Positions 1 to 35,300 of a stretch of 64,000 bases of DNA are shown piece after piece. The notes below the pieces were generated by a model that was not told the origin of the DNA, made no database searches, and saw only the letters and a list, made by a program, of their open reading frames with translations. The DNA is from Auanema rhodensis. Its lineage: Eukaryota; Animalia; Nematoda. How positions within the stretch are numbered: position 1 is the first letter of the stretch; the number at the start of each line of letters is the position of its first letter. Location: positions 9,796,001 through 9,860,000 of the forward strand of contig OZ059896.1 of NCBI GenBank assembly GCA_964057225.1, read 5' to 3'. The translations under genes were made by a program, and so were the position numbers.

Positions 1-1320
1 ATTCTCTTCATCTCTTCTTTTTCTTTCATCAGTTCATTTTCATTTCATTTTTAACCACACATGTCTCTACATTTCTTGATTTTCATTTCATTTATCCTAT
101 CAATTTCTATTCTAATTTCTTCCACGTGTTCTTTTTTATTTTCAACAAGCTGTTGGTCATTTTGTTGTCCGCTGGCTGACTGGGACTGACTGCCTATCCT
201 TCAATCGATAATGAAATCAAATGGGATGACGACGCCAGTTCACACGAGGCTAGCCCACACACAATGTGTTGGATCTTGTCATCTTTTTTATGACTTATTT
301 TTTAAATTCTTCATTATTTTTCATTTTATTGAATAGTGAAATGAAAGTATCTCCCTATTTCTTCTCTCATTATATATGCTACATCATCTCATTGCAAAGT
401 AATTCTGGTGAGTGCCAGCTTAAGCGTTGATCAACGGAAACATTGAAGCTATTCCTTCCTTTCCTCCTGGTGTTCCTCTCATTTTGATAGATATTTTTTA
501 TCAAATAGATAGCTACGTATCCCAAACTACGAATAAATATATATATTTTTTGGTTACAACTATATTTCTAGTTTCCATAGTTCAATTGTTTATATTTCCG
601 TTCTTACTAGCTTTTTTTTGGTTTCTAAAGATATCTTTAAACATTTATCAATTATAATTATATTTTTTTAATTATTTAATTAACTTTTTTGTTTTGTTTT
701 GTTTTAAAACTTAAATTATTGTTAATTCTTTTATTTATATTTGCACTCTATGTTTTACTGAATTATTTCTATTATATTCTTCATTTGTTCTATTTTCGGA
801 TTCTATTTTGACATTTCTCGAATGAATCTAAACGAATGAACTATGGTTTCTTCATTCATCCCAATACTTTCCTCTTTACCAAACTTTATTTGTCTTTTAT
901 CATTGTCTTTTCTTTTCATTTCATTTATTTTATCAAAATAATAGTGTTGAATTATTGAAATTTGGCTTAATTATCCCTTCTAAGAAATATAATACTCTAT
1001 TCTATATACTTATACGTTTATAATTCTATGATAAAGTTGCACGATAGCTTTGTTATTATATCTTTCAATTGTATTTTTCTTTCATTTCTCACTTTTATTT
1101 CTGATTATAGTTTCATCTTGACAAAAACTAATACCAAATGAGTTTTGGCACCTTTGCCCTTTGTTATGAAAATTTGTTGTGGAAAATAGGCAATTTATTT
1201 CAAATTTATGTTGCTATGATGTAGTACAATATTTTGAATAGTATTTTCTCTTTATTTAATATGTTTCTTGTGATTTTGTTTTCGTTTTTCATATTTTGTA
1301 TTAATCCATGAACTTGTAGG

Positions 1321-4300
1321 ATGTCTCAGGTTAGGGCAGATTATGATTTTGATGCTCAACCTGGCTCTGGGGAAATGAGCATTAAGAAAGGAGAAATTCT
1401 CACCGTTCTTCGACCCGTATGCTTGTCTATTATCAGTGAATTGTTGTAATAGTATTTTTCAATTTAGAATGTGGAAGGCGGTTGGATAGAAGGACGAAAT
1501 TCAGATGGCAAAATGGGTTTATTTCCCAAATCCTATGTTAGCTCGTATTCTGGGCCTCCTCCGGTATTTTATTTATTTTTCCTTATATTTAAAACTGTAG
1601 ATCAAGTTATTCTAATTATGCATTATTCATGGTATTGAGTTTGTCTTGCAATTCCTGGTTGAGAATAGTTTATTTCCATTTTTTTCCACTTTGCGCTGAA
1701 TTTCTGAACATTTTTTTTCTACAATTTAAAGTTTAACAGATGGCGTTGATTTATAAACTCAATCTCAATTCAACCAAAAGTTTTGGAATATAATTTTCTT
1801 CCTATTTCCTGCTTCTACCGTCTTGCCATACTTTTGATTTTTACTCTTTCATGGCTCTTGTATGGAAAACCTTTGAGCAAAAGTGATTGTTCATTCAAAC
1901 GGTGTTCTCTCTAGCATATTGCCTGTCCTACTGGACATAATTAGTTGAAATGGAGCTCTGAAGATTGAGCTTTCGAGCATATGCTCGCCTTTTTATTTTT
2001 AAAGTTCCATTTTCTTGTTATGCTACATGTGCATGTGAGTGGTTCAACTTACCTAATTTGCTCTCGTATTTGTCTCTTCTGCTCCGTGGGCTGATATTGG
2101 TGTTTCTTCTGTTAGTGTTGTAAAAAAAAGAAAGCCTTTACCTATTTCATGAAATCTTCATTTTCTTCTTTTTTTTTGAGAAGTCGTCGTGTTCTAAAAG
2201 GGTTTTAGACAGTATATAGTATATATTTGCCTCTCCCTTTCTCTTAATGTAATTCGAATTGAGCCTCCCCGGTGGGTGGAATAGCAATCGTTTTGCCGTC
2301 TTTCCATCCCAGTTCAATTTAGTTACTTATCTTAACGAATGAAATAGTTTTCATCGAGTTTCAGTTTGAGCATTGTTATCTACCTCAAGCTATCAAAAAC
2401 TCAGTTTTTCTTTATCTGAAGTACCATTTCGCAAACGTTCTTGTACTACCTGACTTTTATTTTCTTGATATTACACAATGATATCACTGAGTTCTTCTCT
2501 ATTGTGATTGTTTCATCGTTCTATCTTCAGAAATTCATTTTCCCATGCTTTTCACTGCTGGTCTTCGAAAAGTTGTCGATCAGTATGACGCTAATGCGGC
2601 TGCTATTACCGCCACAGCCGATGAGACTGCGCGCTTGCTTCATGAGCGACGTCGTCGTCAGATGATTCGTCGTCATACGTGCTCTACTTTGAAACCTGAT
2701 CCTGTTTTTCCTATTACTTCTCTCGAGCCTTGCTTAACTATAGCGGAGCATGATGATCAGGCTCGTCTATTTTTTCATATATAATCATAAGGAGTAGGGC
2801 TATATAACGTGTTTGCTACTCAATAGCAACATCTTAGAGACTGGAATATACCAAAGTTATAATACTTGATTAACATAAATAAAGCTAATTTTAGCTTGAA
2901 GTCAAATTCAATTTTCAATTGAACAGTTTTGAATATGAGTGTTCAGGTAGCACCACCCAGCTTACCACCTGCAGCTCCTAGCAAGTCCTCAGTTCCTGCT
3001 CGTCCTCCTGTTGATGATTGGGGTGTGTCTTCATTCCATCCAAATCCTTCCGGAGTCTACCCATCTATTAACCATGTTTCATCTCGTAAGTTTACCTACA
3101 GTTTCATACAACTATTGAATTTGAAATTATAGAAAGTCAAAGTGGTTCAGCTTCTCAAATAAATGATGACTTTGATGACGAATGGACTGATGAGGACGAA
3201 AATGAGGTATGAGCTTATAAGTAATTTATATTGAGCATGTTTGAGTTTGTTTTTATGTTTTTCCGCTTTGTGTTGATTCCCTGCTCAAAACATATTCAGA
3301 TATGAGAACAGCTTATTTAATCTTTGAAAGTTATAAGAAAATGGAGTATGGTGCTAAAGTATGACTTTGCCTATTTGTCTTTGCCTACGTCCTTTCTAGC
3401 CTCTAGAGACTCCTATAGTCGTGGGTGTTAAGGATAAGACATAACCATTGAAAAGAGATATAATGTCATGATGCGGTTCTTTTCTCTTATTTTTTAGTTT
3501 TCTTAATTCTTGACTGTTCAATCTATCACTCTTTACCCAAGTTTGTTATATATACATATGTACATATGTACATATGGTTGTTTCTCATCCTATCCTTATT
3601 TTAAATCTCTTCTATAAGCAACTTTTGGTTGTCTAAAACCTTTTTTTATGTTTCTTTTTTGTTTCTTAACTAAAATATTACATCAATAATGGCATCAATA
3701 ATCTTTAAAATAATTTACGTGGCGTTGTATGAGCTGTTTCTGATCCCAAACATTTTTTTCCTCTTCCTCACTTGCCACTAACATCAGTGCCAACATCACA
3801 GGAAAAGAGAAACATCTATTCCTCATGAGTTGACATATATGCTCAAGGAAAGAAGAATTGTGAATGAGCTCGATTAACTCATTCTCTACCATTTAAAATA
3901 TTCTAAGCCTTTTCCTCGTAAGCTTCTTCAGCATATTATAGTCAGTCATTGTTTTCAAGCGTTTTGCTTACATTCTCTTATTCTTATGAATATCTTTAAT
4001 ATATTTTCTAGTAAAAAATTTTTATTGTTTAGTCTGCTAATTAACTATATTTTCTTCGATTTATCTAGATTTTCAGTTATATTCATTTATATTTTCCGTT
4101 TTTACGATTTTTCCGGTTTTCGTTTACATTTTTTTCTCAAATTGTGGTCTCTTACTATTACCGTTTATGTTGCTAATCTTTTCTTTCTACTACACATGCA
4201 CTAAGAATTTTTTTTTATTCTTAGTATATCTCGATGTGGTTAAATATGTGACGGAAATATAAGGGAAGTGTTGGATATAGCCTACATGGTGTTTCTATTG

Positions 4301-7300
4301 AATAGAACAACAATTGACATTTAAAGCTTTAAAAGGCGCTTTTCCTTTCAACATACATCATCATCATCTAGTCGCGTTCAAATAGTTGAAAACTGTTTCC
4401 TTTCATTTTAATTTGTATTCGTTTTTGTAAGAAATTTCGTATTTCTTAAAAAAAATTTCTTTTCTGTTTGACGAGCATTTTAATCTGTCTTCTTTAAGCA
4501 CTTGCTTTCATAACCAAACTATCTTTTTTCCTCCTTGAAGCTGTAACGATCATTCATTTTCTTAGTGTTTGACTTGAATTTATCGCTGGCATACTCAGAT
4601 TCAGGATGTTGTTCTCTCGTGCTCGCTCATCTAGCTCTGTAGCTTTGGAATATCTACAAGTTCCACATTATAACGGACATAGAGGAAGCTATGTAAGATA
4701 TATCTAACGATAATTTTGTTCGGCAAATTAGAGGAATAGAAAGAAAGATTGACTTTTCCTCTGTCCATTAAACTTTAAACTTGGGAAGCCTCATAGCTTG
4801 GATTTTAACTTATTCCCTTTAATGGTTTAATTAGTTCGTGACTGCCCATGATTTCATGGATTGAAGCATCAAGGCAAGCTCAATTCAGCTTTCTTTTTTT
4901 CATTATACAGGCCGAAAGCTCTGTGCACATTTTTTTTCAAACCATATACTCAGCTAATTTTATTTTATCACTTACATACGTGACCATATGATAATATATA
5001 AATTAGCTTTTATGTTTTTTTATTTTTTTTATTAGATTTTTCATTTTCTTTTTATTGATATCATATCCAAAACTTCTTTAGATTTGTAAATACTAAAAAA
5101 ATCTGGTAGGGGAAGCTGATTGGCTCTATTATTTGGGCTAAACCACCCACAGACATATAGACTCACTTACCCTAGATACTATATCAACCCAATAGTAGCA
5201 AAGGCGTAGCCCTTTTCAAATATTGAAAACTATCTAATTTCATATTTTTTGAATTATTTTTTCGCAACAAATTCTTATGCCCGCTGATATGGTTCGCTGT
5301 AATTATGGCTATACTTCCAATGTACATCGCCCATCTCTTGAATTCAAGGGTGGACGTCGTATGAGTCTGTCTTTCTGTATCATTCCGGTATGTTTCATTC
5401 TTGGTTAGTTCCCTAAACCACTGAAAGCCATGGCTCAATAAATGGATAATTTTTCGAAGGACCTATCAAATTTATCTTCAAACGATTTCTTGTCCATCGT
5501 CTAATTCTTTTCTTCGATACAGGACCATCGTCTTTCTGTTAACGGACCACTACCCGCCCCTCATACATCCCCACAATCTCGATCTGCTTCTCGCACTTCA
5601 ATATCAACCGACGACGATCGGCACGATAATCAAAATCGTCGACGACATAGTCGTCGCTCTTCTAGTAAAGATTGTCATTCCATGGAACGTCGTGATAAAC
5701 GACGTCATTCTCGTGCTTCATGCCATAAGGTAGATGAAAGATTTTTGCCATAAGAAAGCATATGTCAGGCTCTTCCATGCTTGTCAATATGTTGTAGTTG
5801 ATAGCTGCTTCTTGTTCTAAAATAAGACTAAATATATGGATATATGAGTATGAATAGTAGTTGATGTTTGAGCTTCTCTTATTTTATGGTGATTGCTTGT
5901 GATTGATTAATCATCTGAAGTGGCCTTGCATGTTTTGTGTACTTGTGACGTCTGTTGCAGTTTTATAGCTTTTTCAATACTTTACTAGCTACATATAGCT
6001 CATCCAATTATTTTAAGGAACCTGGAGCTCCAAGTTCACATCAACCTGTTGCTCAAAATCATGAAGGAGGTCGTGGATCCATCAATAGAAGTCAGTCTGC
6101 CGGTGATAGACCTGGAAGTAAAGTTAATCGTAATATTAATAGGTGATTAATTGTTACGAATGTGCGCAAACCTTATTATTTTTTTAGGTTTTCAAACTTT
6201 GTCAAATCCGGTATGGAAGCCTTTGTACTTGGAGAATCCAAGATGAATGGACAGCCAGGTGAAAAACACGAGATTGTGGTAGGTTTTCGTCAACATTTAA
6301 AAAAATTGAAAGTTTTCCGAATTCGCTCACAAACTATCATTATTTTCTAATCTTTCGCCATGATTTACAGAGCTCGAGCAATATGATTCAATGGAAACCA
6401 ATTCAGCAATATTATACATGCACATTGGGAGATAAAATCAAAAAAGAAACAAAACTGAAGGGATTGAAAAGTTATATAGCATACTCTATTACTTCATCTC
6501 TCAGGGGAATTCAAGTATGTTGTACATCTTTAGATCTAATTCTTGTCTAAAATCAAAATTTTTAAAGTTCTCTATTGATTTAGGTGTCACGACGCTATAA
6601 GCAATTTGATTGGCTTCATGAACAATTATCAGCTAAGTACATCATGATTCCCATTCCTCCCTTACCAGAAAAGCAAGTTTCTGGACGATATGAAGAAGAT
6701 TTGATTGATCATCGTAAACATATTTTGCAAATTTGGGTTAATAAGATTTGCCGACATCCTGTATTAAGTCAGAGTGAGGTAAATGGGTGTCTTGTTGCAT
6801 ATAATAGAATAACTGTAACATTCTAAAGGTTTGGCTACATTTCATTAGTTGCACCGATGAGAGAGAATGGAAGAGCGGTAAAAGGAAGTCAGAAAAGGCT
6901 CGTTTTTGACTTCTTATTTTTATTTTGGATAAACATTTAGGATGAATATGTTGGCGGAAATTTTTTGAATTGCATAAGTGTTCCTCAGGGGAAATTGGAT
7001 ATATCCCATGTGTAAATTAATATTTTTTCAAAGTTTAATACAATTTTATTCGTTTTCAGTGAAAACCAAGTTGAAAAGTTCCAGAAAAATGTGAAATTCA
7101 CTGAAGATGCAACAAATGTAATGCATGGTCGTATGAAAGAATTCCAGAAAGTTTATCAAGGACGTAAGAAGTTTTGAGAAACTGCATTTTATAGTTGAAA
7201 TCATTTAGCTGTCAAAGCCAATTGGCAGAAAATGGCTCATGCGTTCTCATCTCTTGGACAAACATTCAATGATGATCATCCTAGTAAGCATTTTGATATA

Positions 7301-7831
7301 AATGTCGCAAACTTTATCAAATTGTTCAGAAAGTGGAAAATTATCCGCTGCATTGGGTGTGACAGCTGCTCAATATCACTCAATTGGAGAGGAATTTGAT
7401 GTTCATACTAGAAATGATATGGAGCCAGTGGTAGAAGCTTTATTCTCTTTCAAAGGAACAGTACAAGGTGTTCCTGATATACTTCAAATACATAAGGTTG
7501 TTACTTGTGAAACAGAACATTAATATATATTTCGAAATATTCAGCAAGCGATTCAAAAATATAGAGAAAATCAGTCAAAGGTCTCTAATAGTGATGCTGA
7601 AAAAATCAAGCAACGGGTCGATTCTATCAGTTATTCAGTTCTTGCTGAAATGAATCATTTGAATTCTGAGAAGGTTTCTATAATTTCTATTAATTGCTTT
7701 AGAAATAGATATATCTATTGTAGATTGAAGATGTTCGTTCCACCATGAGCACTTACCTTCGTAAGCAAGCAGATTTCTATCAAAAACTTGCAAATCAATT
7801 CGCTGACATGGCTAAGCAGTATGACTTCTGA
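1321..7831 (+). CDS. lst-4: Sorting nexin LST-4 (SNX9/18/33 family; SH3-low complexity-PX-BAR), multi-exon
   Basis: Spliced exons 1321-1416, 1468-1563, 2947-3085, 3133-3206, 6018-6142, 6188-6278, 6371-6514, 6584-6778, 6829-6897, 6941-7011, 7060-7163, 7209-7283, 7330-7496, 7545-7673, 7724-7831 join in frame. They encode SH3 (MSQVRADYDFDAQPGSGEMSI...GGWIEGRN...GLFPKSYV), acidic NDDFDDEWTDED, PX (VSRRYKQFDWLHEQLSAKY...PPLPEKQ) and a BAR domain ending KQYDF*. Closely matches C. elegans LST-4 as recalled. Confidence 0.95.
2545..2760 (+). CDS. lst-4: Candidate alternative first exon of lst-4 (SH3-less isoform)
   Basis: Acceptor-like CTTCAG at 2525-2530, ATG at 2545, 72 open codons (MLFTAGLRKVVDQYD...HDDQ), then a phase-0 donor CAG|GCTCGT compatible with exon 2947. 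Confidence 0.65.
4606..4692 (+). CDS. lst-4: Candidate second alternative first exon of lst-4
   Basis: TTCAG|G-ATG, 29 codons MLFSRARSSSSVALEYLQVPHYNGHRGSY, phase-0 donor GTAAGA at 4693. Confidence 0.55.
5523..5729 (+). CDS. lst-4: Arg/Ser/His-rich 69-codon cassette exon of lst-4
   Basis: ATACAG acceptor, 207 nt open in phase 0/0 (DHRLSVNGPLPAPHTSPQSRSASRTS...RRHSRASCHK), donor AAG|GTAGAT. GC content is well above the flanking intron. Confidence 0.7.
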
Positions 7832-8308
7832 ATTGAATGAAAAATTGCAGTTTGACTTGCTGTAAATTCTTTTCAATAATTTTATTTGTAAATTTGTGTA
7901 TATGATATATGTGATGAGTAGTAATTATTGAAAAGAAAGTATGACATAAGACTTTGGACATTTTGTCGTTTTTTCAAAGATTTTTTATAATAACGCTATA
8001 TTGTATATCGGATATTCTGGATATCCATAGAGTTTTCGAAGATGTTGTTTGCTTTTTTCCATTTTCTTCACTTACTTGTCCATTTGAGGATAATTCTCAG
8101 ATTTGAACGATTTATAATTTAATTTGAGCCTGTGAATAGTTGTGATTTTAGGTGTTTAAATACCTATATAAATTGAATGATTTAGTAATTGTTTTTCTTT
8201 TTTCCATACATATGTTCAAATTTCGCATTAAAGCCATAATTATTTGTTATTTTTTGATATGTTGACAGTATATATCTACTTGTTTATAACATTCTTTCTC
8301 AGAAACGT

Positions 8309-8381
8309 GCTTCCGTAGCGCAGTAGGCAGCGCGTCAGTCTCATAATCTGAAGGTCGTGAGTTCGAGCCTCACCGGGAGCA
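8309..8381 (+). tRNA. tRNA-Met (CAT), elongator type
   Basis: 73-nt cloverleaf GCTTCCG...CGGGAGCA with D-arm GCGC/GCGC, anticodon CAT at 8342-8344 and T-loop GTTCGAG. G1:C72 and T54 indicate elongator rather than initiator. A T4 run follows at 8386-8389. Confidence 0.97.
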
Positions 8382-8512
8382 ATTGTTTTGAATTAGGTTG
8401 GCTTGAATTTTTGACTTTCATTTTTAAATGAAAGAACAATATCAACTAACAACTTTTAATAAATTTTTTTTCGAGAAAAGCTGAATAAAAAGGAATCTCC
8501 AATTGTTGAAAA

Positions 8513-11500
8513 CTAAACACAAGTGTCCTGTATGTTAGAAACATGTTTCTTTGTTGGATCCTCAATATATACAACTTGATTGTTTTCTTCGCATAAATAT
8601 TTTCTAGTCGACTGATTGTTATCAGGCCAATTTTTCCCTAAAAATCAATTTTTAAAGTAAGTTTTGAGGGATCTGGTTAAAAACCTGATGGGCACGTTAC
8701 TGTCAAATATGTTGTACGCACAAAGTATTGCGAGAATGGAGGAGAAAGTGGCTGAAAGAAAAAACCATAAGTTATCGAAGAATTTGAGTAAAACTGACAA
8801 TCAGCAGACGAATGCTCAAGGTGTTATCGTATTTTGGAAGTAGGCAAGAGTTTGTACACGGGATATGAATAGGTGTTGAGGAGTTTGAAGAAGATCCATC
8901 ACAGAAATATCTTTTTGTTTCTTCAGGTAAATTATTATAATTATGCTCCTCTGTTCCTGAACAAAGAAAGTTTGAGAATTGAGCCATGCTTTAAATCAAA
9001 TTGTTGCTTACGTTGACTACAGTTTACGAAAATTGTTCCATATCGTAGTTCAAGCGTAGATGTTGTAATATTTGAGTTTAAAACTGAGATGGGTAGACAG
9101 CCCATTGTACATGATAGATATTCAACTCTCAATCTGGTAATACTATCAACCCAAACTGGTCCAGCAATTGGATCCATAATAAGCTCAAGATTTTGTTCAG
9201 GCATTTGATAATATTGATGGTTTGTTGGATGAGATCCTGAAAAAACACAACGAATTAACTTGAAGCATTAATAAATTAAAACCTTCAACACATGTAATTC
9301 TCATTTTACATCCAATTTTATAAATTCCTTCGGTATATTCGCAATTTTCATCAACTTCACGATCAACATTTGATCCAGGAGGTGCTGGTGCTCCAAGAAC
9401 CTAGAACATAATACTACTAATGCTATTTGGATGATGTAAAAACCTTTTTACATGGCTCTATAATGCTGTTAACTCTCTTCAGTTGATTATCATAATAATT
9501 TAAGGATGATTGACAGACGAATTCTTGTATTCCGACTGAAGCATAAGCACTGGCGGAACTATATTCATATCCTTCTATGCAGCGCAAGATTACCGTTCTA
9601 TTAACTCCAATAAATTCACCATTGTTGTATGGATTGAGTGTAATTGGATTCTTAAATGTTTTAAAATTATTTTTGATTGCAACTATAAATATTGTTGTTA
9701 CCTCAAGAAATTGAACACCCTCTGGAAGATTATTATATGAAATAACCGGGCAAGCATCTTTACAGAAGTTTTCCCGATTTCCACTAACACTTGTACCGGC
9801 TGTCTGATTTGTTTTTGGACAAATGTAATTCTTTCCAGATTTCGAAATTTGTTCAATAACCTCATTCACATATGAGTAGATCGATTCTGAAGTGAAAGAC
9901 GTTGAGTTTAATGTGATTGTTTTGATTAAAGATATGTACTTGAATAACATTGGAATCCGTTTCTACTAGAATCATAATATGTCTCATAAATTGTTTCAGA
10001 TGAAGATGATTTAAGTTCTACGATTTGAGATATGTTCAAGTTTGCACATCCTGCTATGCAATTAGTAATCTATTTCATTTTATAAATTAAATTATTTCAA
10101 TATTAAACTATATTCTTACTGAATTTAATTTTTGTTCATTATGATCAAGCCAACTTTGTTGAGATTCTGAACATGTAGCCACTTGATACCCATTGTATAA
10201 AGCATATAAGTTATCAGGATAATAACCTGATAATATTCCTTTCATTATATTAAAAATATAAATTATACCTGAAGCACAGCTATATCTTATAGTACATCCA
10301 TGATTGAAGAAATCATTATTCTTGGTACATCCTGAATCTCCTACAGTTTCCAATATATTATTCGGCTTAATTATATAAATTATATAATGTAAATATTATT
10401 TTTATACTTGACTAAGTCTTTGACATCCTTTGGCTTCCTCACAAGCTTCAATATTGGCATTGGTTTGTTTAGTATCCACATCGATATACTGATTAGACTG
10501 TGGATCACATTGTAATGTTTGACGTCCTAGCTGTCGATGAGCTGACGAGGAAGAATATACGAATCCAGTACGACAACGGAAAACATATTGTGAATTTCCA
10601 GCTACATACGGGAATCCTTCTTCAAGTTGTCGAGGTTCCGGCTCCTGAAATGATTGTTAAAACAAATCGTTTTGTTATTCGTTAGGTCAAACTTTAAAGA
10701 TCTCAACACCACTTGGAAGAGCAACAAGTTGTCGACAAGCATTAGTGCATCCCTTGTCAGTTGTACCATTTTTGGAATCCGTTGGATCGCAATAATATGG
10801 ATGAGACTGAGTACTTGTTTGATTTGAGAAAACATCTGAATTATTATTATTTTCTTTTTTCATAATCAATATAATACCTATTTCTTTGCATTCAATCTTT
10901 AAACCATTTATATAGAAAGTCTTTTCACGAATTCGAATAGATTCATGTGATCGATCATATGGTTTACATCCTGATATACATTTTAATCCTGTTGTAACCT
11001 AAATAATTATATATAAAAATTAAAAAAATATATTATTATTATATAATAAAACCTTATAATCAAATTGATCTTTCCATCCTGCACCACCATTTGAACAAAC
11101 AATTTGCTGTTCTCCGGATGGTACAAAATATAATGCAGATTCAGGCATATAACCTATACAAATAGAAAAGTATAAGAAATTATTCAAATTATTATTTTAA
11201 GAAGAAATTAGATAATTATTACCTGGTTTGCATTTTAAGTTTATACGACAGCCAGATGCATAATAATTATTTCCTAGATCACTGCATCCCGTAAGTGATT
11301 CCATAACATTTTCTGGATTTTGTACAAGTTTCTCAAACATTTTATGTAATTTATGAAATATTTAACTAATATTACCAGACATTCATCTAATACAGCACTA
11401 CGCTCACAAGATGTTGGTGTTGTATATGGCAATCCATTAATAGAATTCACATATCTTTGAGTATTTCCATCACATCGGAATTTTTCTGATTGCATTTGAT

Positions 11501-14500
11501 TTGGATATACAAAATCTTAAAAAATAGTTTAAAAATAAATTACAATATTATAGTTTGCTATACCATTCAAACAAGAAAATGAATATTCACGTCCGTTAAC
11601 AACTAATTCTTTGTTGTTATATTCAATTATTGGAGGATTCTAAATAAACTTTCAAATGAAAGAATAATTGAAAAGCTTGATATCTTACTGTAACTTTAAG
11701 ATTAAGAGAAGCTAAATCAGGATGTGTCATTCTGGGACATGTTTGAACACATCCATCTCCTAATTGAACAGATTGCTTATAATCTTCTTTTCTCACATAT
11801 CCAGATGTTCCTCCACGACATTCGAAGGTATTATTTTGTCGAGTTTCCTGAGTATTAAGCTCCCATATAACATCTTTAAAAGATAAATATTATTAATATA
11901 AATTATAAAAATAATAATTATTACTATCTCCTTGACATTGAACCATCACATTTTCTCCTTCAAGAATATAAACAATGTTATTAACTATATGCACTTTTGT
12001 ATTATCCCAAGTAGCTACAGCATTTGGATTAGTCTGAATATAATTAGTATAAACTTTATAATTTAAACAAAAATATGTTTGTTGTTTTATATAATAATTA
12101 CCACTGTGCTATCTAGACGACAAGCTGCTTGGCATTGCAAGAATGTTGATGTTGACTGTCCATTTTCATCAGTCCAAGATATTCCATTGGAGCAAGTTAG
12201 TACCTGCTTTCCAGTTGAATAGAATTTTGAATTTGTAGGAATATATCCTAAAAATTTTTTAAAAATCAAATAACAATTACTTATTTCAAACCTTCTTTAC
12301 ATGATATGGTAACTTTACATCCGTTTTTGTATCCAGATTCACAGTTAGTAAAGACTTGATCACCGTTTGGAACTGTAATATCAGGGCATCCGGATCCAGA
12401 ATCCATAGTACATGTTTGAATAGTAGCCTAAACAATTTTATTTAAAAAATATTTTTAATAGAAATGCGTTTCAGACTTCAGTTTTATTATTATTGCTTCG
12501 ATCAATGTATGTACCAGATTTAGGATCACAGAAAAGTATTTGTTGTCCAGCTTGTTGATGTGCAGTAGAGCTATAACTATGTCCTGAACAAGTTTATAGT
12601 TTTTAAATTTTTATAAAAGAATTATTATAACCTGGCTTACAACGAAGAGTATATGATGATTCTCCAACTACTTGCACTTGAGCCATGCCAAATTCTTCAG
12701 GACGAGAAACAACATCTAGTCCTTTTCCGTCAGTATTTAAAGCAGAACATGGCTTTAAGATTATTAAATTATTTTTTATAATATTAGAATAGTTACCAAT
12801 CCACATAACGATCCTGGGTGAGTTTCAAATCGTTGACTAATCACATTTCTCCAATTCTTTTCAGAAACTTCTCCAGGTAAGCAAACATATGCAAATTGAG
12901 TGCTTTCAGTTCTGTGAACTCCAGAATGTAATGTAGGGAATCTTCCTGAATATATTATTATATATCAAATATTATACTAATTATATATATTTTTTACCTG
13001 ATGAACATGAAACAATAACTTCACTTGCTTCCTTGTAATATATAGTTCCTTCTAATGTGCTACTTGATTCCAAAACTATGATAAAGTTTCCATCTTTTTG
13101 GAAACTTGAACATCCCAAAGCACATGAGATAACATAATTCTTTAATTTTCATTTATTGAAATTGTTTTTTATTAACTGAAATCCTACTTCATCTTCTGAT
13201 ATCCATTTATGATTTCCTTGTGAATCAGTTGTACAGGAAATTTTTTGAGAATTTTGTTTTGTATTTGTTGAATATGATCCTACAGTTAAGTAACTATATG
13301 GTATTATTCAAACATAATTTACCATTCATGCAACGAAGACTCAATTCACATCCAACATTTCTTGGTTCCTGCCCACATTGAGATCCTGTTTGGGTAATAG
13401 AAATCTTATTGATAGTAGTATCAAGAGCTGGGCATTTCGGTAATTCACTTCGTACACATGATGCAAGCTGAAAATATTTTTTGTGATTAAATCGTTTATA
13501 TGAAGAAATATTTATAATCATACTTGAACATTTGTTTGATTTGTATCCATATCTCTATAACCCATTGAAAGACTTGAACAAGCAAGTCTCTGCTGTCCAC
13601 GAGTTGCTTGTGGAGAATCTTGAATATTTAATTATTACATACACAAATAAATAATAAGAAATACTTTTAGGAAACTCATAACCAGAAGCACATTTAGCGG
13701 TATATTCCATATTAACTACAAACCGCTGGCCATCACGTTCATAGACCATAGAATCAGCTTTGTAAACTGGAGTTAACAATGTCTGAATCAAGAAATTTTA
13801 GAAATAGAAAGAATGACACAACAAACTCCAGGTGATTCAGTTCCTTCAAGTCCTTTACATACTCCGCTACAAGCATCACCAGGAATTGTATTATAACGAT
13901 AAGAAGTTAATTTCATATATCTATCACTACCTCCCTTAAATATAAATTATTTTATAATAATAAAATCATAACTTACAAGACATTTGTATGTAATTTCGTT
14001 TCCATTTACTTTATCAGCATGATTGTTTATATCATATTCTTAATTTATTATTATTAAAAGAAGGTCATCATATAATCTTTCAAATACCTGGTGTTTTACA
14101 TTTGATTGTAACTTCAGCTCCAGCCATTAGATATTCATTTGAACCATAATGAATAGTATTGGATGGTGACTTAGTATAGATAGCCGTCTCCATATTTTTG
14201 ATAACCGAACATGCTGGTAAGCATTTCAATGGCTGTACATTCTTATTATTATTCTATAATATATAAATAAACAAAAATATATATATATTGTCTTGAATTG
14301 TCAAACATTTGCATCAACAAATCCATCGGTTCCAGCTTTACAAACTAATTTTTGGTCTCCAGTAGGACTTGTACCTTGGCTATTATCCGGAGCATATCCT
14401 ATATTCATATTTATCTATTTATGAAACAATAAATTAATGCAAATACCTTCTTTACATCTTATTGTAAGAGAACATCCTTCTGGTGTTAAGCCCTCTTTTT

Positions 14501-16829
14501 CAGAGCAATCGTTGTTATAGATAATCTCAGAATTAGGATATGTTTGAGTATTAACTAATGTACATCCTTGACTTCCATCTCGTACACAAGTCATAGGAAC
14601 TGACTAATATCCGAGCAAGTTTAAGAAGAAATTTAAAAATTTCAACATACATTTGTGTTTCCAGTTTGTGTATTCTTCCATCCTTCGGTATTTCCAAGAC
14701 AGCTAAGAACTTGTTTATTTTGATTATCATTAGGATCTGGTGATCTATAACCTGTAAATAAAAATTATATAAATCTAGATGTATATAAATATAAATTTTA
14801 CCGTTTTCACATGTTACTGTTACAACTGATCCTGATTGTACGAAATTCTTATTGCTTTTATTAACGATAACGGCATTAGTTACAAGCTTCGTACCAACAG
14901 GTGATGGATAGGTAATCTCACAGCTCTTCGTACATGATGCTGGATTCATATTACCGTTGTCATTCATCTTATCATCTAAATCCAATGTTACAAGCGAACG
15001 TCATTATCATTGATCATCGTTTTACCAGCATTCTTCCATCCGTCACTACGACATACATAAGTTAGTTGACTTTGGCTATTCTGATTAGGAATATTAGGTC
15101 GAATATATCCTTTAAATATTTTGTTGTTTTTCAATAAAATTTTACAAATTCACCATCTTTGCATGATGTAATCATTGTATTTCCTATGTGATGGTATTCA
15201 AATTCTCCGTTTCTACTCTGAAAAAATATTTTTGAATTTCAAAAAGAATTCATCAGCATCAAGAAATTATCAACTTACTGTTGATCCTGATTCTTGAATA
15301 GTGTTAGTTGATTGTTGTTGGGCACTAGTTAATTTTGAACATCCGCTTATACATGTTTCTCCATATCGACCAGAACCATCTACTTGAGCATTCGAACCAT
15401 CGGGTCTTTTCCATTGTCCTTCTTTACATGATAAAGCATATCCATTTGGATTTGTTTTCATGTAAAATCCTTGATTAATTCCAGAACCTTACAATTTGAA
15501 CAAAACAATTTTCTTTTTAATTTATAAAATTTTAATATACTGTTAGTATTGCAGCGAATAATTGCTGTACATCCGTTGCCAACAACACCCGAATTTGGAG
15601 AACATGGCCCTTCATAAGAGAAGACAGCATCTCGAACAATATTGGCATTGGATAACATTGGACATCCATTAGCCATACACTAATAATATTTATAAATTAT
15701 ATATGTTTCGAAGTTATTCATTACCGATTTTGGAGAAGCTGAGTTAGTTCTAGTGTCAGGATCATACCAAGCATTTTTTCCTCCTGTACATGTTAAATAC
15801 TGGAAACCAGAAGCAGAATGTGGTGATGAATATTTGTATCCTGAATTAATAAGTATACTGCATGTATAGTATATAACTAACCATCTGCACACTTAAATTG
15901 ATATGTTGATCCTGAAATCAAGACTTTACGTCCATGATACTCACGAACATAGTTCGAGAATGTGAGAGGATTTGACATTATTTTTACGTTATTTGGTATA
16001 TCTCTGAAATAGCTAGTAACTAGGAAATAGTATGATATTCTAACCGAGCATCCAATGGTTCACAAATTGCACGACATACAGCTGGATAACTGTTTTCTTT
16101 TGAAGTAACTACATCAAACCATCCAGTTTTTTCAGTACAACGATGGTTATCTTCCTTATTTTCTTCATGTTTTATATTATGAAATACATATCCTTAAATC
16201 ATATTATAAGTTAATATAATTATTTAATTATAACAAGTAGTACCTTCTTTACAAACTGTCCTTACAACTGTATCTAATGGCCAAAACTGAATAGCTCCAT
16301 TACGATAAATTTCTGTTGGACGTCCAATACCAGAATATGTTGCATTAGCCATTTCTGTGTTTGTTAAAACAACACATCCTTTAACACATGTTGGAATCTA
16401 TAAACTTCATATTATTCTCATATAAAACAAATTATATAAAAATTTTGAAAAAGAACTTACAACAGCTTTATTTGAAGCAACAACCCACTTATTATTGTTA
16501 TTACAAGTAATATCAATACCTGCTCCAGTAGTATCTCTTGCAAGATAATATCCAAATTTATTTTCAATGTTTCCTAAAAAAAATTAATTTGCTATAATTA
16601 AAAAAAGTTCTAAATGAATATGGATTAACCATATCATATAATTACCTGGATTACAACGATAACGAAGAGTACATCCAACTTTAGCTCCAACTACATTCTT
16701 GCAAGCTGGTGTATCTTTCGCACTTGGAGATATATCAGCTTCTCTACCAAGATCAGTGTATGAACAGAAAGCTCTAACTTCATTCACATGAACTAACAGA
16801 TAGAGCAAGAAGAACAATTTCATTTTCAT
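8513..16829 (-). CDS. Large secreted protein (~2000 aa, ~46 exons) of ~24 tandem atypical CCP/Sushi-like modules
   Basis: Signal peptide MKMKLFFLLYLLVHVNEVRA. Exons splice in frame to TAG at 8515-8513 (...IQDTCV*). Repeated pattern C-x(25-40)-C-x2-G[YF]-x(12-20)-C-x(3-8)-[WY]-x(10-20)-C with short inter-module linkers (CVKGC, CRAIC, CISGC, CTKSC). No transmembrane segment seen. Confidence 0.85.
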
Positions 16830-17287
16830 CAGAATTTCGATGAAGCAAATGATGTTCTTCGAATTGAAATATCAACTGAACAAGAAGTCCGTTCAGTAGT
16901 TCGTTTGAATATCAGCGATATGAAAGCTTATGATGTAAAATAAAAATGGCTCACAAGGCCATTTCTGCATAAAGAATCAGAAAGATGTAACTATTATCTC
17001 ACGTATAATAGCCTTATAATGTAATAACTTTATGTGAATCTATTGATATTATGATAATTCTATTTTCAGATCATTATTCATATCATATAATCATACAATT
17101 CATTCATTCATTCGTTCATTCATATGCATACAAATATTAAAATTCATTTATTCTTAAATATCTTTTTTATTTATTTTCTGTTTTAAACATGAAGATAGCT
17201 TCATCATAATTATCATATATAGTATAAATATAGATAATCATGTTATACATATAACTAAATTAATATTTCTTTCTTTAAGATTTGAGA

Positions 17288-29300: not shown

Positions 29301-32300
29301 AAAAAAATTTAAAACAATAAAAAACAATAAAATATATGTTTTATGTGTTTTTCTTTGGTTATAGTATTTGCTGTACGAAGTTGTTCACATATATTCGGTA
29401 AGCTGCTGTGGTGAATATGTTGTCTTCATTTAGCTTTATACTGTTTTAACCATTACAAATATATTTTATTATGTTAATATAGTATATAATATATTAATCT
29501 AAACAAGAATATGATCATAATATTCATATATTTCAGGTCTCCCGTCTTGTTATCCTTCATGAAGAGGCTGAAGATGGTAATGCTATGCCTGATCTTACTC
29601 GACCAGTTGGTCTTGTATCACAAGCAGTTGATAATCTTATCAGGGTAAGCAAATTAATTATGATAAGCTATATAATCAAATTAAATCAAAATTTTATTGA
29701 AATTATATATTTATATTAAAGATATCATCTTTAATATATGATATATAAGATATAAAATTATAAATATGTACATTCACACCTTAAACATTTAAAGTTTTAG
29801 ATATGAAATGATAATATTTGATATTCATCACCTTGGTTGAATGTGTAAAAGTGAAAAAAGTTTCATTTACAATTAAAATTGTTCATGCTACTTCAATTAA
29901 TTGTTGAACAGTTGGCCATATGCTATTCCTTTTTCTTAAATGAAAAGAGTTTTTGGATGTGTTTTTTTTTGGAATTCAATCAAGATACTATATACCAGAT
30001 GTTTCTTTTATCGAAGTTCTTCAACTTTAAAATGTGAACACTACAAATGAAAGAAAGCAATGGGTCTCATGAAAACCGAATGCGAACTTTACATGTTTAT
30101 CTAAGTGGAAGAGAGTAGGAAAATGAGAGACATGGAGAGATGAAAAACAAAAAGTGGGCGGCGAAGATCAAGGAAAATGCTACTGAAGAAGTTACCCCGT
30201 AATCATGAAAAGGCAAAGGCTCGAAATTCGGAAGACCACCATCGACTGTGTCGCTGCGGTTGTTGTTGACATTCTGATGTAAATGCAAGGCTCTGATCCT
30301 GAATGCATACAGACAACAGAAGCAAAGAGCTATGAAGCAAGAAGATAGTACAGACAAAAGTGGAAAACGAAATGGAGAAAGTGAAAGAGAAAAAGGTAGA
30401 GAGCCGATGTGACGGAAGACAACGGCAAAGACGACGATAATGGCGTAGGAAGAGAGCAGGAGAATGACGAGCGAGTAAGCACTGATTGAAACGCCCTGCG
30501 TTTGTAGATGACGAAGCGGTGGAAGAAAATGAAGTCGCAATAGTCGTACTGAAATACGACAACGACAGCAATCGTCAGCAGCAAGTCCACGGAGACGGAA
30601 AAGGTTCGACGAGCTAACGCTAACACGAGCAAGCAGGCGCCAGCTCACGAATAGACGAAGCGTTTAGTGAATGCTGTCGGAGCGGCCAGTCTCCTCAACG
30701 GTACGGCGTCAGACTTATCGACATAGATCCAGCAGTTATCGCCACGAAGAACGTCATACCTCAAGGCAGTACCTGAAATCATACGCTCAGCACGCTATCT
30801 ACCAACGTCGTAGCCGATCTGACGGCAGGGTATTCCTTTTCAATATATGTATATTCATATTGGTTTTTTTGAAAGCCATATTGGAATTCCTTTTTTTTTC
30901 CAAGATTATTTGATGTTTTCTATATAAAATTTCTAAGTTAGAAAGTTTTTTGTTTGATTCTTTCACTTTATTCTAGTCGATGATGACAAACTCTTTCAAT
31001 AAACTTTCTTAAAGTACTTATGAGGGGTGTTAAATGCAAATATTTAAAAAATATATTGATTTATTATATAAAAATTCATTTTTACCATAAAATATTTTAC
31101 TAACTTTAGGTTGGTTATGAGACTTGTGATAGCTCGGACGATCGTCTTCTGCAAACCGACATGCCTCCAGCATTGCAAAGAGTTGAACATAGCTCTAAGC
31201 TTTTGGAAGAATCTTGCCACATGTTGAAAGTGAGTACAACAACTCAAATATATTTTACAATTACTTCCCTTTAGGCTGATGCTTATTCCGTTCCTGCCCG
31301 TAAGAAGCTCATTGATGGAGCTCGTGGAATCCTTCAAGGAACATCAGCTCTTCTCTTGTGCTTTGATGAATCTGAAGTTCGCAAAATCATTCGAGTTTGC
31401 CGTAAGGTTCTAGACTATCTTGCTGTTGCAGAAGTTATCGAAAGCATGGAAGACTTGGCCCAATTTGTTAAGGTAAGCTTGAAAGCTCCTTAATTGGACT
31501 TAGTTTTAAATATTTCAGGATATATCTCCATGGTTGGCTCGCGTCACTCAAGATGTTAATGCCAGACAACAAGAGCTAACCCATCAAGTTCACCGTGAGA
31601 TTTTGATCAGATGTTTGGATGCTATCAAGACTTTATCCCCTATACTCATTTGCGCCATGAAGATCTTCATTCAAATCAGCAATGAACCAAGCCAACGTGG
31701 TGTACCAGAAGCTGCAGAAAATAGGTAAGCCAAAACTTGATTATTAAAATGCAAACGTTATCGAACTTTAGAAATTATCTTGGCCAACGTATGACTGAAG
31801 AAATGAATGAAATCATTCGTGTTTTACAATTAACAACTTATGATGAAGATGAATGGGATGCTGATAATGTTACTGTCATGCGTAAAGCTTTATCTGCAGC
31901 TAAATCTTTGCTCACAGCTGCTCTGGATTGGCTCGCTGATCCAAGAGGCTTACGCGGTACATTGATACCTGAAATCATTTTTAGAATTACACGAAACTTT
32001 TTTCAGGAGCCGTTGGAGAGAAAGCTATTCGTCGCATCCTCGATTATGCCGATAAGATTGCTTCTCGTGCTCTGCCTGAAGACAGCTATCATATCAAGAG
32101 ATCCATTCAAGAAATTGTTAGCCTTACTGATAGCATCTGCCAACTTCGTGACCAAGGACGGTAAGAAATTTATATCGAAATCATTTTTATATGAATTTTC
32201 AGCGATAACGAAAGCCTCACCCACAACTGCGCTGAGAAGCTTAAGGCTTTGGTCGGTACCAAGCACACCAGTGGTATCCTTCCTGATGCTTTGGTTAATG

Positions 32301-35300
32301 CTCAAAAGAATGGTGGAGCTAACCCTGCTCATACCGCTGCTGGCCGTCTTGAACAAGCTCTTCGGTGGTTGGATAATCCAGGTGTTAACGATGGAGGTCT
32401 CGGTCTTCAAGCTATTCGCATGATGACTGATGATGCCAAGAAATTGGCTGATCGTTTGAATCCACAAGACAGGTTAGTTGTATCTCGTATAATATGTTCT
32501 ATTATAATATTTTAGAAACCGTCTCATGAACTTGTGCTCAGATATCGACAGGTTGGCCAATCAGCTTGCTGATTTGGAACGTCGTGGTCTCGGAAACTCC
32601 CCTGAAGCCAATGCTATTAGACAGCAATTGAAGGACAAACTCCGCGAGTTGGCTGAATTTATGCGAAAGATCCTTACTGACCGTGTTGTAAGTTTTCAAG
32701 CCTCAGAATTTTAGAAGCGTATTCACGTTCAGATTTCTCATTCATTATCATTTTCAGGTGGAAGATTTCGCTGACATCAGTACTCCTCTGAAACAGTTTG
32801 TTGATGCTGTTCATGCTGACATGAGCATGCCTAACCGAGAAGGAAACTTCCATGACAAGTCAAATCGCTTGAAGGATCACTCTGGAAGCATGACTACAAC
32901 AGCTAGATTGGTAAAACATAAATATAATTCATTCACAATAACAAATTTCAAATAATTGATAGGTTGCCACATGCGGTCCATGTAAGAGCAAGAGAACCGT
33001 TGAAGCCATTTTGGATACAGCTGAGAAGGTTGATCAAATGACTCCTCAAATTGTCAATGCTGGAAAAATTCGTTTGCATAATCACTCTGATGCTGTTGAG
33101 CAGCATTTCGAAAATCTTCACAGGTACTATAGTATAAGTTTTATTGGAATATACATAACATTTATAATTTAGACAATTTGGAGATGCTCTTCACCGACTC
33201 CGATCTCATGTTGATGACGCTATTGATACTGGAGAATTTGTTCGTGCCAGTGAAACCGTAAGCATTTTCTCGAATATTCAAATTTCTTCTCTTTTTATTT
33301 GAATTTTTGAATTATTTTTATTTTCTCATTTACAGGCAATGCGTCGTTACACCACCAGATGTGAAGACGCTATCCAGAATGCTTATCCACAAGGAATGGT
33401 TGATAACACCTCACAGGTATATAATCAGCATAATATAATTATTATAATATTTCTTTAATTTGTATAGATTGCCCGTCTGGGTAATCGTGTCCTGATGTCT
33501 GCCAAGAACGAAGCAGAGAATTCGGAAGAACCGGCTTTCATCGACCGTGTCAACAATGCGGCCTCGCAACTACACTCCGGTAAGACAATTACTTTTCTTC
33601 TTTACTTCAAACGTCAATCCCTCTCTGCCTTCCTCTTCGTTCTATCCCTCTTGTTCTTCTATGAGCAGACAACTGCAACCTCAACGTCGTTGACTGACAC
33701 CGAGGTCTCTATCCGATAGTCTTGATATCAATAAATACGATTTCAAGACATTTCCCTTCATTAAAAATGCCTCTATATAATGATTATTCCTATGAATCTG
33801 ATGAATATGATACTGATGAGGTGTATGAACGTTACTATACCACTCGTAGTATTGTAGATCCAATTGTTTATATTTGTAAGTTTTGTAATCATTAATCAGA
33901 ATGACCTCTAGGTCTTGTTGCCATCATTGTTGTGTTAAACATTTCACAATGTTCTTTCAAACAACAGTTGTGAAGCTATCAAAATTCATGTTTCGTTCAT
34001 GAACTAGACACATGTTAATTCTGATTTGCTTACCCTGCCACCTGCGTGGGTGGATCAAGAACTTAGCAAGCATGTTTAATATAAATAAAAATTGTCCAAG
34101 CACCAACTGAAAATTAAAAAAGATGTCTGCCTATTCTCTATATTCGAAATTTCCAGCTATACCACCTATGGTTAATCAAGCCAAACAAGTTGCTATGAAT
34201 CCTCGTGATCATATGTCTAGTGATCAATGGCGCGGAGCCAATGATCATCTTTTGGATTCTGTTCGTGCTGTTGGAGATGCCATTATGGGAGTCCCATCTA
34301 ACGGACGACAGTCTTCTGTTTCTTATCATGAGAGCCGCGCCTCTCCATATCAACCAACTAGAGAGGTAAGCGAATGTGTGTATGTCTCTTGAGAACGTTC
34401 TCTAGACTCCCGAGAGCGTTGTCTTACGCTTCAACTTCTGACGTATCCACTAGAAATTGCGAAGACATTTTGCAAAAAAATAAAAAATTTCCATGAATTT
34501 TTCTTTTCAGTCATCTCAAGTTCTTCACTCTGTTCAAGCTCAGGCTCCAAGACCACCTGTTGTCCATAACAAGGTTATCATTCGTGAAGAGATTCCTGCT
34601 CCACCACGTCCACCACCACCAGTTGAAATCAGTCCACCACCAAGACCACCACCACCACCAGAGTATGACGAGGAAGAAGAGACCAGAGCTTTCTGGGAAA
34701 GATATCCACTCCCACAAGCTTCTCATCAACCTATTCTTTCTGCTGCTCATAACCTTCACAACGTAAGTTACTGAGCAAACAAACAAACAACTGAACTGCC
34801 GAGACAATCGAACTAAGAAGCCTCATGTTCTCTGATTTTCTCTCTTTTTCTTTAATATTTCTTATAGAAACATAGCGTCAAAAAGTAAAATAAATACAGT
34901 AAAAAAGAAATATTCAATATAATTTTGAACTTGAAGGATCAGAAATGCAAAAGTCATCGTATATCTTCTATTCTTTCAGGAATTGAAACAATGGTCATCT
35001 CAAGAAAATGATATTGTTGCTGCTGCTAAGAGAATGGCTATTCTTATGGCCAGATTATCTCAATTAGTACGTGGAGAAGGAGGAACTAAGAAGGTTGATT
35101 ATAAATAAAAAATAAAATTATAATAATATTCATAATATACAGGATCTCATTGATTGTGCCAAGGCTATTGCTGATTCCAGTGAAGAGGTTACCAGACTAG
35201 CTGTACAATTGGCTCGATTATGCACAGACATCAAGATGAGAATGGTATATACTTATATAATTAAAGTAAGCTATATTCATATATACTTAATTTCAGGCTC

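Follow-up and report, generated by a model that had tools for sequence, protein, structure and literature searches.

A gene encoding a very long, predicted secreted protein was distinguished in a 64,000-nt window of the genome of the nematode Auanema rhodensis (assembly GCA_964057225.1, contig OZ059896.1, positions 9,796,001 to 9,860,000 of the forward strand). The gene occupies positions 16829 to 8513 of this window (minus strand), and its product is composed of a signal peptide followed by 24 enlarged modules of the Sushi type (also called complement control protein, CCP), arranged as eight consecutive A-B-C triplets, (A-B-C)x8. As demonstrated by sequence comparisons, it belongs to an uncharacterised protein family occurring in nematode clades III, IV and V, with members containing 8-10 A-B-C triplets. 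We consider it likely, with a probability of roughly 65%, that the protein is a secreted, multivalent extracellular scaffold of 24 CCP modules, acting in the worm's own tissues.

Gene model and module architecture

The minus strand from position 17000 to 8300, translated in three frames, revealed a chain of short, cysteine-containing open segments, which were joined into an exon chain by two passes of dynamic programming and then curated by hand; the automatic models read through several introns, and the introns were set manually. The curated model runs from a start ATG at 16829 to a stop codon at 8515-8513 and comprises 46 exons with a coding sequence of 6084 nt (2027 amino acids plus the stop). 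All 45 introns are short (41-72 nt) and have GT-AG borders, their phases are consistent, and one frame remains stop-free over the 6084 nt. The splice junctions are supported by comparison with Auanema sp. JU1783, since exons 23-46 are collinear and contiguous on its protein P0002 (54.7% identity); many of the window exons also lie in order on protein P0004 of Heterorhabditis. The intron of module B6 is in frame and contains no stop in the window, yet it is spliced out in Auanema P0002. A tRNA-Met gene and a plus-strand gene of the SH3-PX type are located downstream, so that the CCP gene ends at its stop. A first-pass annotation, prepared from the letters of the window, had proposed one spliced secreted product over 8513-16829, and the 46-exon model, with its consistent phases and its collinearity with P0002 and P0004, bears this out.

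It is highly improbable that the locus consists instead of several tandem short CCP genes or of a decaying pseudogene array. Such a reading could draw on an exon model that rests on DNA sequence, with some ambiguous splice sites, but the 45 introns keep the single frame described above, only one signal peptide is present, 110 cysteines are exactly in register, and in two genera the annotated ortholog is one protein of 2504-2518 amino acids. The annotation of the Auanema sp. JU1783 ortholog as a C-terminal half would likewise be in keeping with shorter genes, but that gene model is cut short where an N gap and a tandem array lie upstream.

The predicted signal peptide (MKMKLFFLLYLLVHVNEVRA) is followed after one residue by the first cysteine of module A1, and from there on all residues fall within modules with the framework C1..C2..C3..C4 (C1 to C4 without further qualification denote cysteines; modules are named as such). 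The earlier estimate of about 24 modules agrees with the 24 Cys-framed modules found. The C-terminus lies one residue past C4 of module C8, and the model, as read, has no hydrophobic tail or anchor. Modules of classes B and C contain four cysteines, whereas A modules contain six, the extra pair, C-x(6-10)-GC-x4-5-C, being placed just before C2. This pair had been noted before in every third module and was recovered in the A modules with a somewhat wider spacing; the sequence motifs quoted at that time are all present verbatim. Likewise, the A-module starts given earlier (16766, 15663, 14563, 13434, 12390, 11381, 10425 and 9390) lie 0-2 nt from the C1 codons, and the repeat spacing is real, although its measured range (0.96-1.13 kb) is wider than the period of about 1.05-1.1 kb originally claimed.

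All four framework cysteines are present in 23 of the 24 modules. The exception is module A8 (9013-9400, minus strand), which has lost both C1 and C3, and the total of 110 cysteines therefore equals 8x14 minus 2. The same two cysteines are missing from Auanema P0002, whereas Heterorhabditis P0004 keeps both; a joint loss would fit a disulfide between C1 and C3, the CCP pattern of disulfides being C1-C3 and C2-C4.

The modules are enlarged, with about 80-90 residues versus about 60 for a typical CCP and a C1-C2 spacing of 29-45 residues. Regarding the CCP hallmark of a glycine and an aromatic residue after C2, glycine at C2+3 was read from the model in 17 of 24 modules; tryptophan between C3 and C4 occurs in half of them (12/24), and tyrosine stands in its place in most C modules. 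A phase-1 intron after C2 is conserved in most modules and, in the 17 modules with the glycine, lies within the Gly codon of C2-x-x-G, while a single exon holds C4, the linker and the C1 that follows. The A-B and B-C linkers always consist of 3 residues and those from C to the next A of 4-8 residues, a pattern repeated in the Panagrellus ortholog. Because the linkers are this short inside a triplet and longer between triplets, the triplet may be regarded as the putative structural unit of the protein.

Order of the modules

The period of three is apparent at several levels. The best exon-exon matches track the position in the triplet, and similarity is higher within classes than between them, to an extent reached by 0 of 20,000 label permutations for the 24 N-half and for the 24 C-half pieces. 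Hidden Markov models (HMMs) of the A, B and C classes, built from modules of Panagrellus redivivus only, assigned 39 of 48 window half-module pieces to the expected class, versus 16 by chance. A module tree including several nematode species recovers clades for A (22 of 23 modules) and for C (23 of 25). The proposed (A-B-C)x8 order is thus upheld by permutation, by cross-species HMMs and by the clades of the tree.

The expectation that the tree would contain three clades held for A and C, which are sharp classes, but not for B, which is weak and heterogeneous and splits into B1-B5 versus B6-B8. Modules B1-B5 are CCP-like and mostly contain the tryptophan. Modules B6-B8 constitute a subtype, B' (8799-10998, minus strand), without the tryptophan, without the glycine after C2 and with Y[YF]C at C3; B' modules form a clade of their own (support 98/95), apart from the other B modules. 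The same N-to-C split into B and B' is found along the Panagrellus ortholog. Sequence conservation among the window modules is low, with a mean column identity within classes of 31%, and the triplets are about 25-30% identical to one another.

Assignment of the modules to the CCP/Sushi superfamily

Profile searches and predicted structures, taken together, place the A, B and C modules in the CCP/Sushi superfamily. Two profiles were used: (i) a family profile, built from an alignment of family members including the window exons (alignment A4, a label unrelated to module A4), and (ii) a window-only profile for modules of the C type, made from exons of the window (profile A3, a label unrelated to module A3). 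Among PDB sequences, the family profile matched factor H (5.2e-11, its best match) and CD46 (2.3e-7), and all 37 of its 37 matches were CCP chains. Among 1.84 billion representative proteins, the window-only C-type profile matched the canonical Sushi proteins P0012 (9e-14) and P0019 (1.9e-10), and an hhalign comparison of the window C profile with a Sushi protein gave a probability of 62% (E 7.6e-5), with the C2-x-x-G-aromatic...C3 stretch in register. Pfam Sushi (PF00084) is above threshold in 13 family members and is the only family matched repeatedly in the orthologs; no non-CCP domain was found by Pfam in window exons or orthologs. A phmmer search of PDB with ortholog P0001 gave no match, and a word-index search with P0001 returned P0001 itself only, the ortholog cluster representatives being short fragments outside the length window. 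Most weak matches of an exhaustive search were bacterial DUF4379/CapR zinc-ribbon repeat proteins, which were treated as pattern noise.

AlphaFold was run with family alignments on two natural ortholog fragments, P0077 (A+B) and P0007 (A-B'-C-A). The model of P0077 reached a predicted local distance difference test (pLDDT) score of 83.6 and a predicted template modelling (pTM) score of 0.69, and the A and C modules of P0007 have pLDDT values mostly above 85. Foldseek searches with the ortholog models returned only CCP proteins (beta-2-glycoprotein I, factor H, MASP, C1r/s, DAF and CD46). In comparisons made with VIA-align, which is independent of Foldseek, 50 of 50 chains were of the CCP/Sushi type, with Z up to 7.9 for ordinary CCPs. 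Factor H, DAF and MASP are the best matches in the structural comparisons; with VIA-align, module A was aligned with CR2 (Z 6.6, root-mean-square deviation (rmsd) 2.0 over 62 residues) and module B with factor H (Z 6.3, rmsd 2.5 over 64/64 residues). The folding check suggested with the first-pass annotation therefore yielded only CCP structures for the ortholog A, B and C modules and, together with the 37 CCP chains found by the family profile, sustains the description of these modules as atypical, enlarged CCPs.

The further statement that the protein consists of CCP modules only is well founded for A, B and C, but less so for B6-B8. The B' region of the P0007 model scores a pLDDT of 40-62 and contains a predicted helix at residues 164-180, between C2 and C3, which, with the missing tryptophan and glycine and the separate clade, would fit another small disulfide domain inserted in the array, so that the protein would not be CCP-only. 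We regard this as possible, though doubtful: B' modules share the four-Cys spacing and the 3-residue linkers of the other modules, they occupy the B position of triplets in both Panagrellus and the window, and the low confidence may reflect the shallow alignment (depth 5-18).

Orthologs, age and copies of the gene

Using the window C-type profile, a protein of Panagrellus redivivus (A0A7E4V7G8; 2518 amino acids) was matched with E 1.7e-138 over 25 stretches. Other family members include (i) Panagrolaimus proteins of up to 2504 amino acids, with A0A914YY24 of Panagrolaimus superbus among those of the genus, (ii) A0A1I7WG75 of Heterorhabditis bacteriophora (2122 amino acids), (iii) KHN83221.1 of Toxocara canis (2448 amino acids), (iv) CAI4227830.1 of Auanema sp. 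JU1783 (1174 amino acids), (v) ortholog fragments of Anisakis and (vi) shorter relatives in Bursaphelenchus and Aphelenchoides. The recommended search for relatives across nematodes was thus productive, with orthologs in Panagrellus, Panagrolaimus, Toxocara, Anisakis, Heterorhabditis and Auanema, and the family has both free-living (Panagrellus, Panagrolaimus and Auanema) and parasitic (Toxocara, Anisakis and Heterorhabditis) members. Several orthologs carry the automatic name 'Sushi domain-containing protein'. The earlier remark that no named gene of this architecture was recognised therefore holds insofar as none of the orthologs is characterised, but orthologs do exist under this name.

These nematode 'Sushi domain-containing proteins' share with the window gene the A-B-C array, the six-Cys A modules, the B/B' split, the linker pattern, the signal peptide and the collinearity of exons. 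They differ from it in the number of triplets, the panagrolaimid proteins (Panagrellus and Panagrolaimus) being (ABC)x10 versus eight triplets here, and in an A-like tail of the Toxocara and Heterorhabditis models. In Toxocara P0159 (residues ~1560-2448) and Heterorhabditis P0004 (residues ~1330-2122) this tail is composed of repeated A-like modules; the window gene has no such tail. In the two models it may represent either a genuine extension or the fusion of a neighbouring gene.

In the module tree, several modules pair with the module at the same position in another clade with high support (99/96, 99/91, 99/89 and 99/85). Because single modules pair with their positional counterparts across clades, the array must be older than the divergence of clades III, IV and V; module phylogeny thus shows the triplet array to be ancient, each triplet having been distinct since before this divergence. 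The first-pass view of diverged triplets in an old array is corroborated by this pairing and by the (ABC)x10 array of Panagrellus.

The annotation of the Auanema sp. JU1783 ortholog covers the C-terminal half only. Directly upstream of this partial ortholog (GCA_943334845.2, CALQYR020007420.1; extract 1212-10200) there are more than 18 copies of a 216-bp tandem unit, the translation of which looks tRNA-derived, followed by about 4.8 kb of N. The N run and the tandem array probably explain the missing N-terminal half of that gene model.

At least one paralog exists in the 181-Mb A. rhodensis genome, on the same contig at a distance of about 950 kb (8850377-8853750, plus strand). It encodes a signal peptide, (ABC)x3 plus a further A module, a Thr/Pro-rich stretch and, at the C-terminus, a hydrophobic segment, which, judged from its sequence, could be a membrane or GPI (glycosylphosphatidylinositol) anchor. 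Copy counts obtained in own-genome searches are lower bounds, the search with a half-module profile (labelled A2) having missed this paralog.

Comparison with known CCP systems

Vertebrate factor H consists of 20 CCPs, and CR1 of 30 CCPs in long homologous repeats of seven; the repeats of CR1 are recent and near-identical. The window gene resembles both in encoding a signal peptide and then tandem CCP modules only, and CR1 also in having a higher-order repeat. It differs from them in module size (80-90 residues versus about 60) and from CR1 in its period (3 versus 7); its copies are diverged rather than near-identical, the array is shared across nematode clades, and seven similar CCPs in a repeat, as in CR1, are not found. 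A C3-based complement system is not known from nematodes.

A second group for comparison is formed by the immunomodulators TGM, HpARI and HpBARI of Heligmosomoides, secreted nematode proteins with enlarged CCP modules of about 80 residues, four or six cysteines and a short mid-module intron. For TGM, domains of about 80 amino acids with 4 or 6 Cys have been described, and a short intron of 50-70 nt interrupts each of them (PMC10516467). These small proteins contain 2-7 domains, with two exons per domain, versus 24 modules here, and are found only in a parasite lineage. The exon boundaries between modules of TGM also differ from those of the window gene, in which C4, linker and next C1 are not separated. 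No TGM, HpARI or HpBARI chain was present among the PDB matches of the family profile at E<=1, and in VIA-align comparisons of the ortholog models TGM6-D3 (Z 5.6) and HpARI (Z 5.1) scored below ordinary CCPs. The parallel drawn in the first-pass annotation therefore applies to module size, cysteine count and intron, but the modules are no closer to these proteins than to ordinary CCPs, and we see no specific link to the Heligmosomoides immunomodulators in either the sequences or the models.

These data also bear on the main rival reading, in which the protein would be a microbe- or host-directed factor, acting in pattern recognition, as an opsonin-like molecule, or as a modulator of complement or cytokines. 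CCP arrays do regulate complement, Heligmosomoides does secrete the CCP-based TGM, HpARI and HpBARI (PMC10516467, PMC7234810), whose domains resemble the present modules in the features given above, and the family has members in the parasites Toxocara, Anisakis and Heterorhabditis. It occurs equally, however, in free-living Panagrellus, Panagrolaimus and Auanema; its positional module orthologs across clades are unlike the fast turnover of an arms race; and the family profile and the structural comparisons (TGM6-D3 and HpARI versus Z up to 7.9 for ordinary CCPs) do not single out the immunomodulators. We therefore consider a host- or microbe-directed role unlikely.

A functional analogy for the proposed scaffold is offered by LEV-9 of Caenorhabditis elegans and Hig of Drosophila, which, like the predicted product of the window gene, are secreted and mainly composed of CCPs. 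LEV-9 contains 8 CCPs and a WAP domain, whereas neither a WAP nor another non-CCP domain was detected in the window gene and its orthologs; the resemblance is treated as an analogy. Both LEV-9 and Hig are secreted CCP scaffolds of the synaptic cleft that organise receptors (PMC9083331).

Proposed function

The preferred reading of the window gene product as an endogenous extracellular scaffold is favoured by (i) the signal peptide and the lack of an anchor, (ii) the content of CCP modules only, (iii) the short linkers within triplets, (iv) the position-wise conservation of modules and (v) the free-living members of the family. The product would be elongated, stabilised by disulfides and multivalent in binding, and would serve as a scaffold in the extracellular space of the worm itself; from these features we infer its secretion, a rod-like shape, its role as a scaffold and a target that is endogenous and not host-directed, the last being favoured because the family occurs in free-living species. 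As the triplets have remained distinct from one another since a time preceding the divergence of clades III, IV and V, they probably expose differing binding surfaces along a single rod. The 'secreted multivalent scaffold or ligand' of the first-pass annotation fits the signal peptide, the missing anchor and the CCP-only content as a putative role.

Several points weigh against this interpretation. With respect to the gene model, the splice sites are predicted from sequence and from ortholog collinearity, and those at the exon 7/8 acceptor, exons 16/17 and exons 44/45 are uncertain. With respect to the fold, the evidence comes from the modules of orthologs at about 30-55% identity; all Z-scores are below 8, which is middling by the aligner's own scale, and the conclusion of a CCP fold is carried by the uniform list of matches and by the sequence evidence; and the B' modules, one eighth of the protein, fold with low confidence and with a predicted helix. 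The half-module profiles labelled A1 and A2 gave antibody heavy-chain noise or nothing against PDB sequences. The Pfam check proposed earlier had a divided outcome, the 13 matching family members being set against ten window exon peptides that gave no Pfam Sushi match even at E<=10; the exons hold half modules, and we therefore do not count this against CCP membership. A literature search with ortholog accessions and keywords found no study of the family. Finally, no Caenorhabditis or strongylid member is among the named family matches of the window profile search, an absence that is read from those matches alone and that suggests loss or strong divergence in these groups.

The last point touches on a more speculative scenario, which we consider decidedly unlikely: the triplet protein would be an undescribed ancient component of the nematode extracellular matrix, lost by Caenorhabditis, and its modules would have been the endogenous stock from which strongylid immunomodulators of the TGM/HpARI type were made. 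If this were true, the loss in Caenorhabditis would explain why the triplet protein has never been studied.

Neighbouring features

The coordinates of the gene, its parts and the other features identified in the window are compiled in Table 1.

Table 1. The CCP gene, its signal peptide and triplets, and neighbouring features of the window
Feature	Position	Strand	Description and basis
Whole CCP gene	8513..16829	-	Signal peptide and 24 CCP-type modules; curated phases, GT-AG introns; collinear with P0002 and P0004
Predicted signal peptide MKMKLFFLLYLLVHVNEVRA	16770..16829	-	Read from sequence; orthologs P0001 and P0152 start alike, then module A1 directly
Triplet 1 (A1-B1-C1), exons 1-6	15725..16769	-	Cysteine C4 of module C1 at start of exon 7; Cys framework and class HMMs
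Triplet 2 (A2-B2-C2), exons 7-12	14651..15679	-	Cys framework and class HMMs; module A2 best matches Panagrellus triplet 3
Triplet 3 (A3-B3-C3), exons 13-19	13524..14603	-	Cys framework and class HMMs; collinear with Heterorhabditis P0004 residues 225-404
Triplet 4 (A4-B4-C4), exons 20-25	12477..13467	-	Cys framework and class HMMs; collinear with Auanema P0002 from module B4 on
Triplet 5 (A5-B5-C5), exons 26-31	11376..12427	-	Cys framework, class HMMs, collinearity with orthologs
Triplet 6 (A6-B'6-C6), exons 32-36	10408..11331	-	Cys framework and class HMMs; orthologous to the A-B'-C part of P0007, which maps here (own-genome search)
Triplet 7 (A7-B'7-C7), exons 37-41	9444..10365	-	Cysteine C1 of module A7 at 10425, in exon 36; Cys framework, class HMMs, collinearity
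Triplet 8 (A8-B'8-C8), exons 42-46	8513..9400	-	Module A8 without cysteines C1 and C3; Cys framework
tRNA-Met (CAT)	8308-8382	+	131 nt past the stop of the CCP gene, opposite strand
SNX9/LST-4-type sorting nexin-like gene	1312-7745	+	SH3 1312-1446, PX 6584-6823
Vinculin or alpha-catenin-like exon	31737-32420	+	PF01044, E 8.8e-13; GC-richer block at 30-35 kb

Significance

The predicted product is an otherwise normal, if very long, Sushi-repeat protein, and one of the largest all-CCP proteins outside the vertebrate complement receptors. Its three-module super-repeat, kept in register across distant nematode clades, offers a system for the study of how long CCP arrays arise and stay stable. As a family with no named Caenorhabditis match, it may have escaped genetics, but it is still within reach in Auanema, Panagrolaimus and Panagrellus. 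For parasitology, it shows enlarged CCP modules with four or six cysteines to be ordinary building blocks of nematodes rather than a Heligmosomoides invention.

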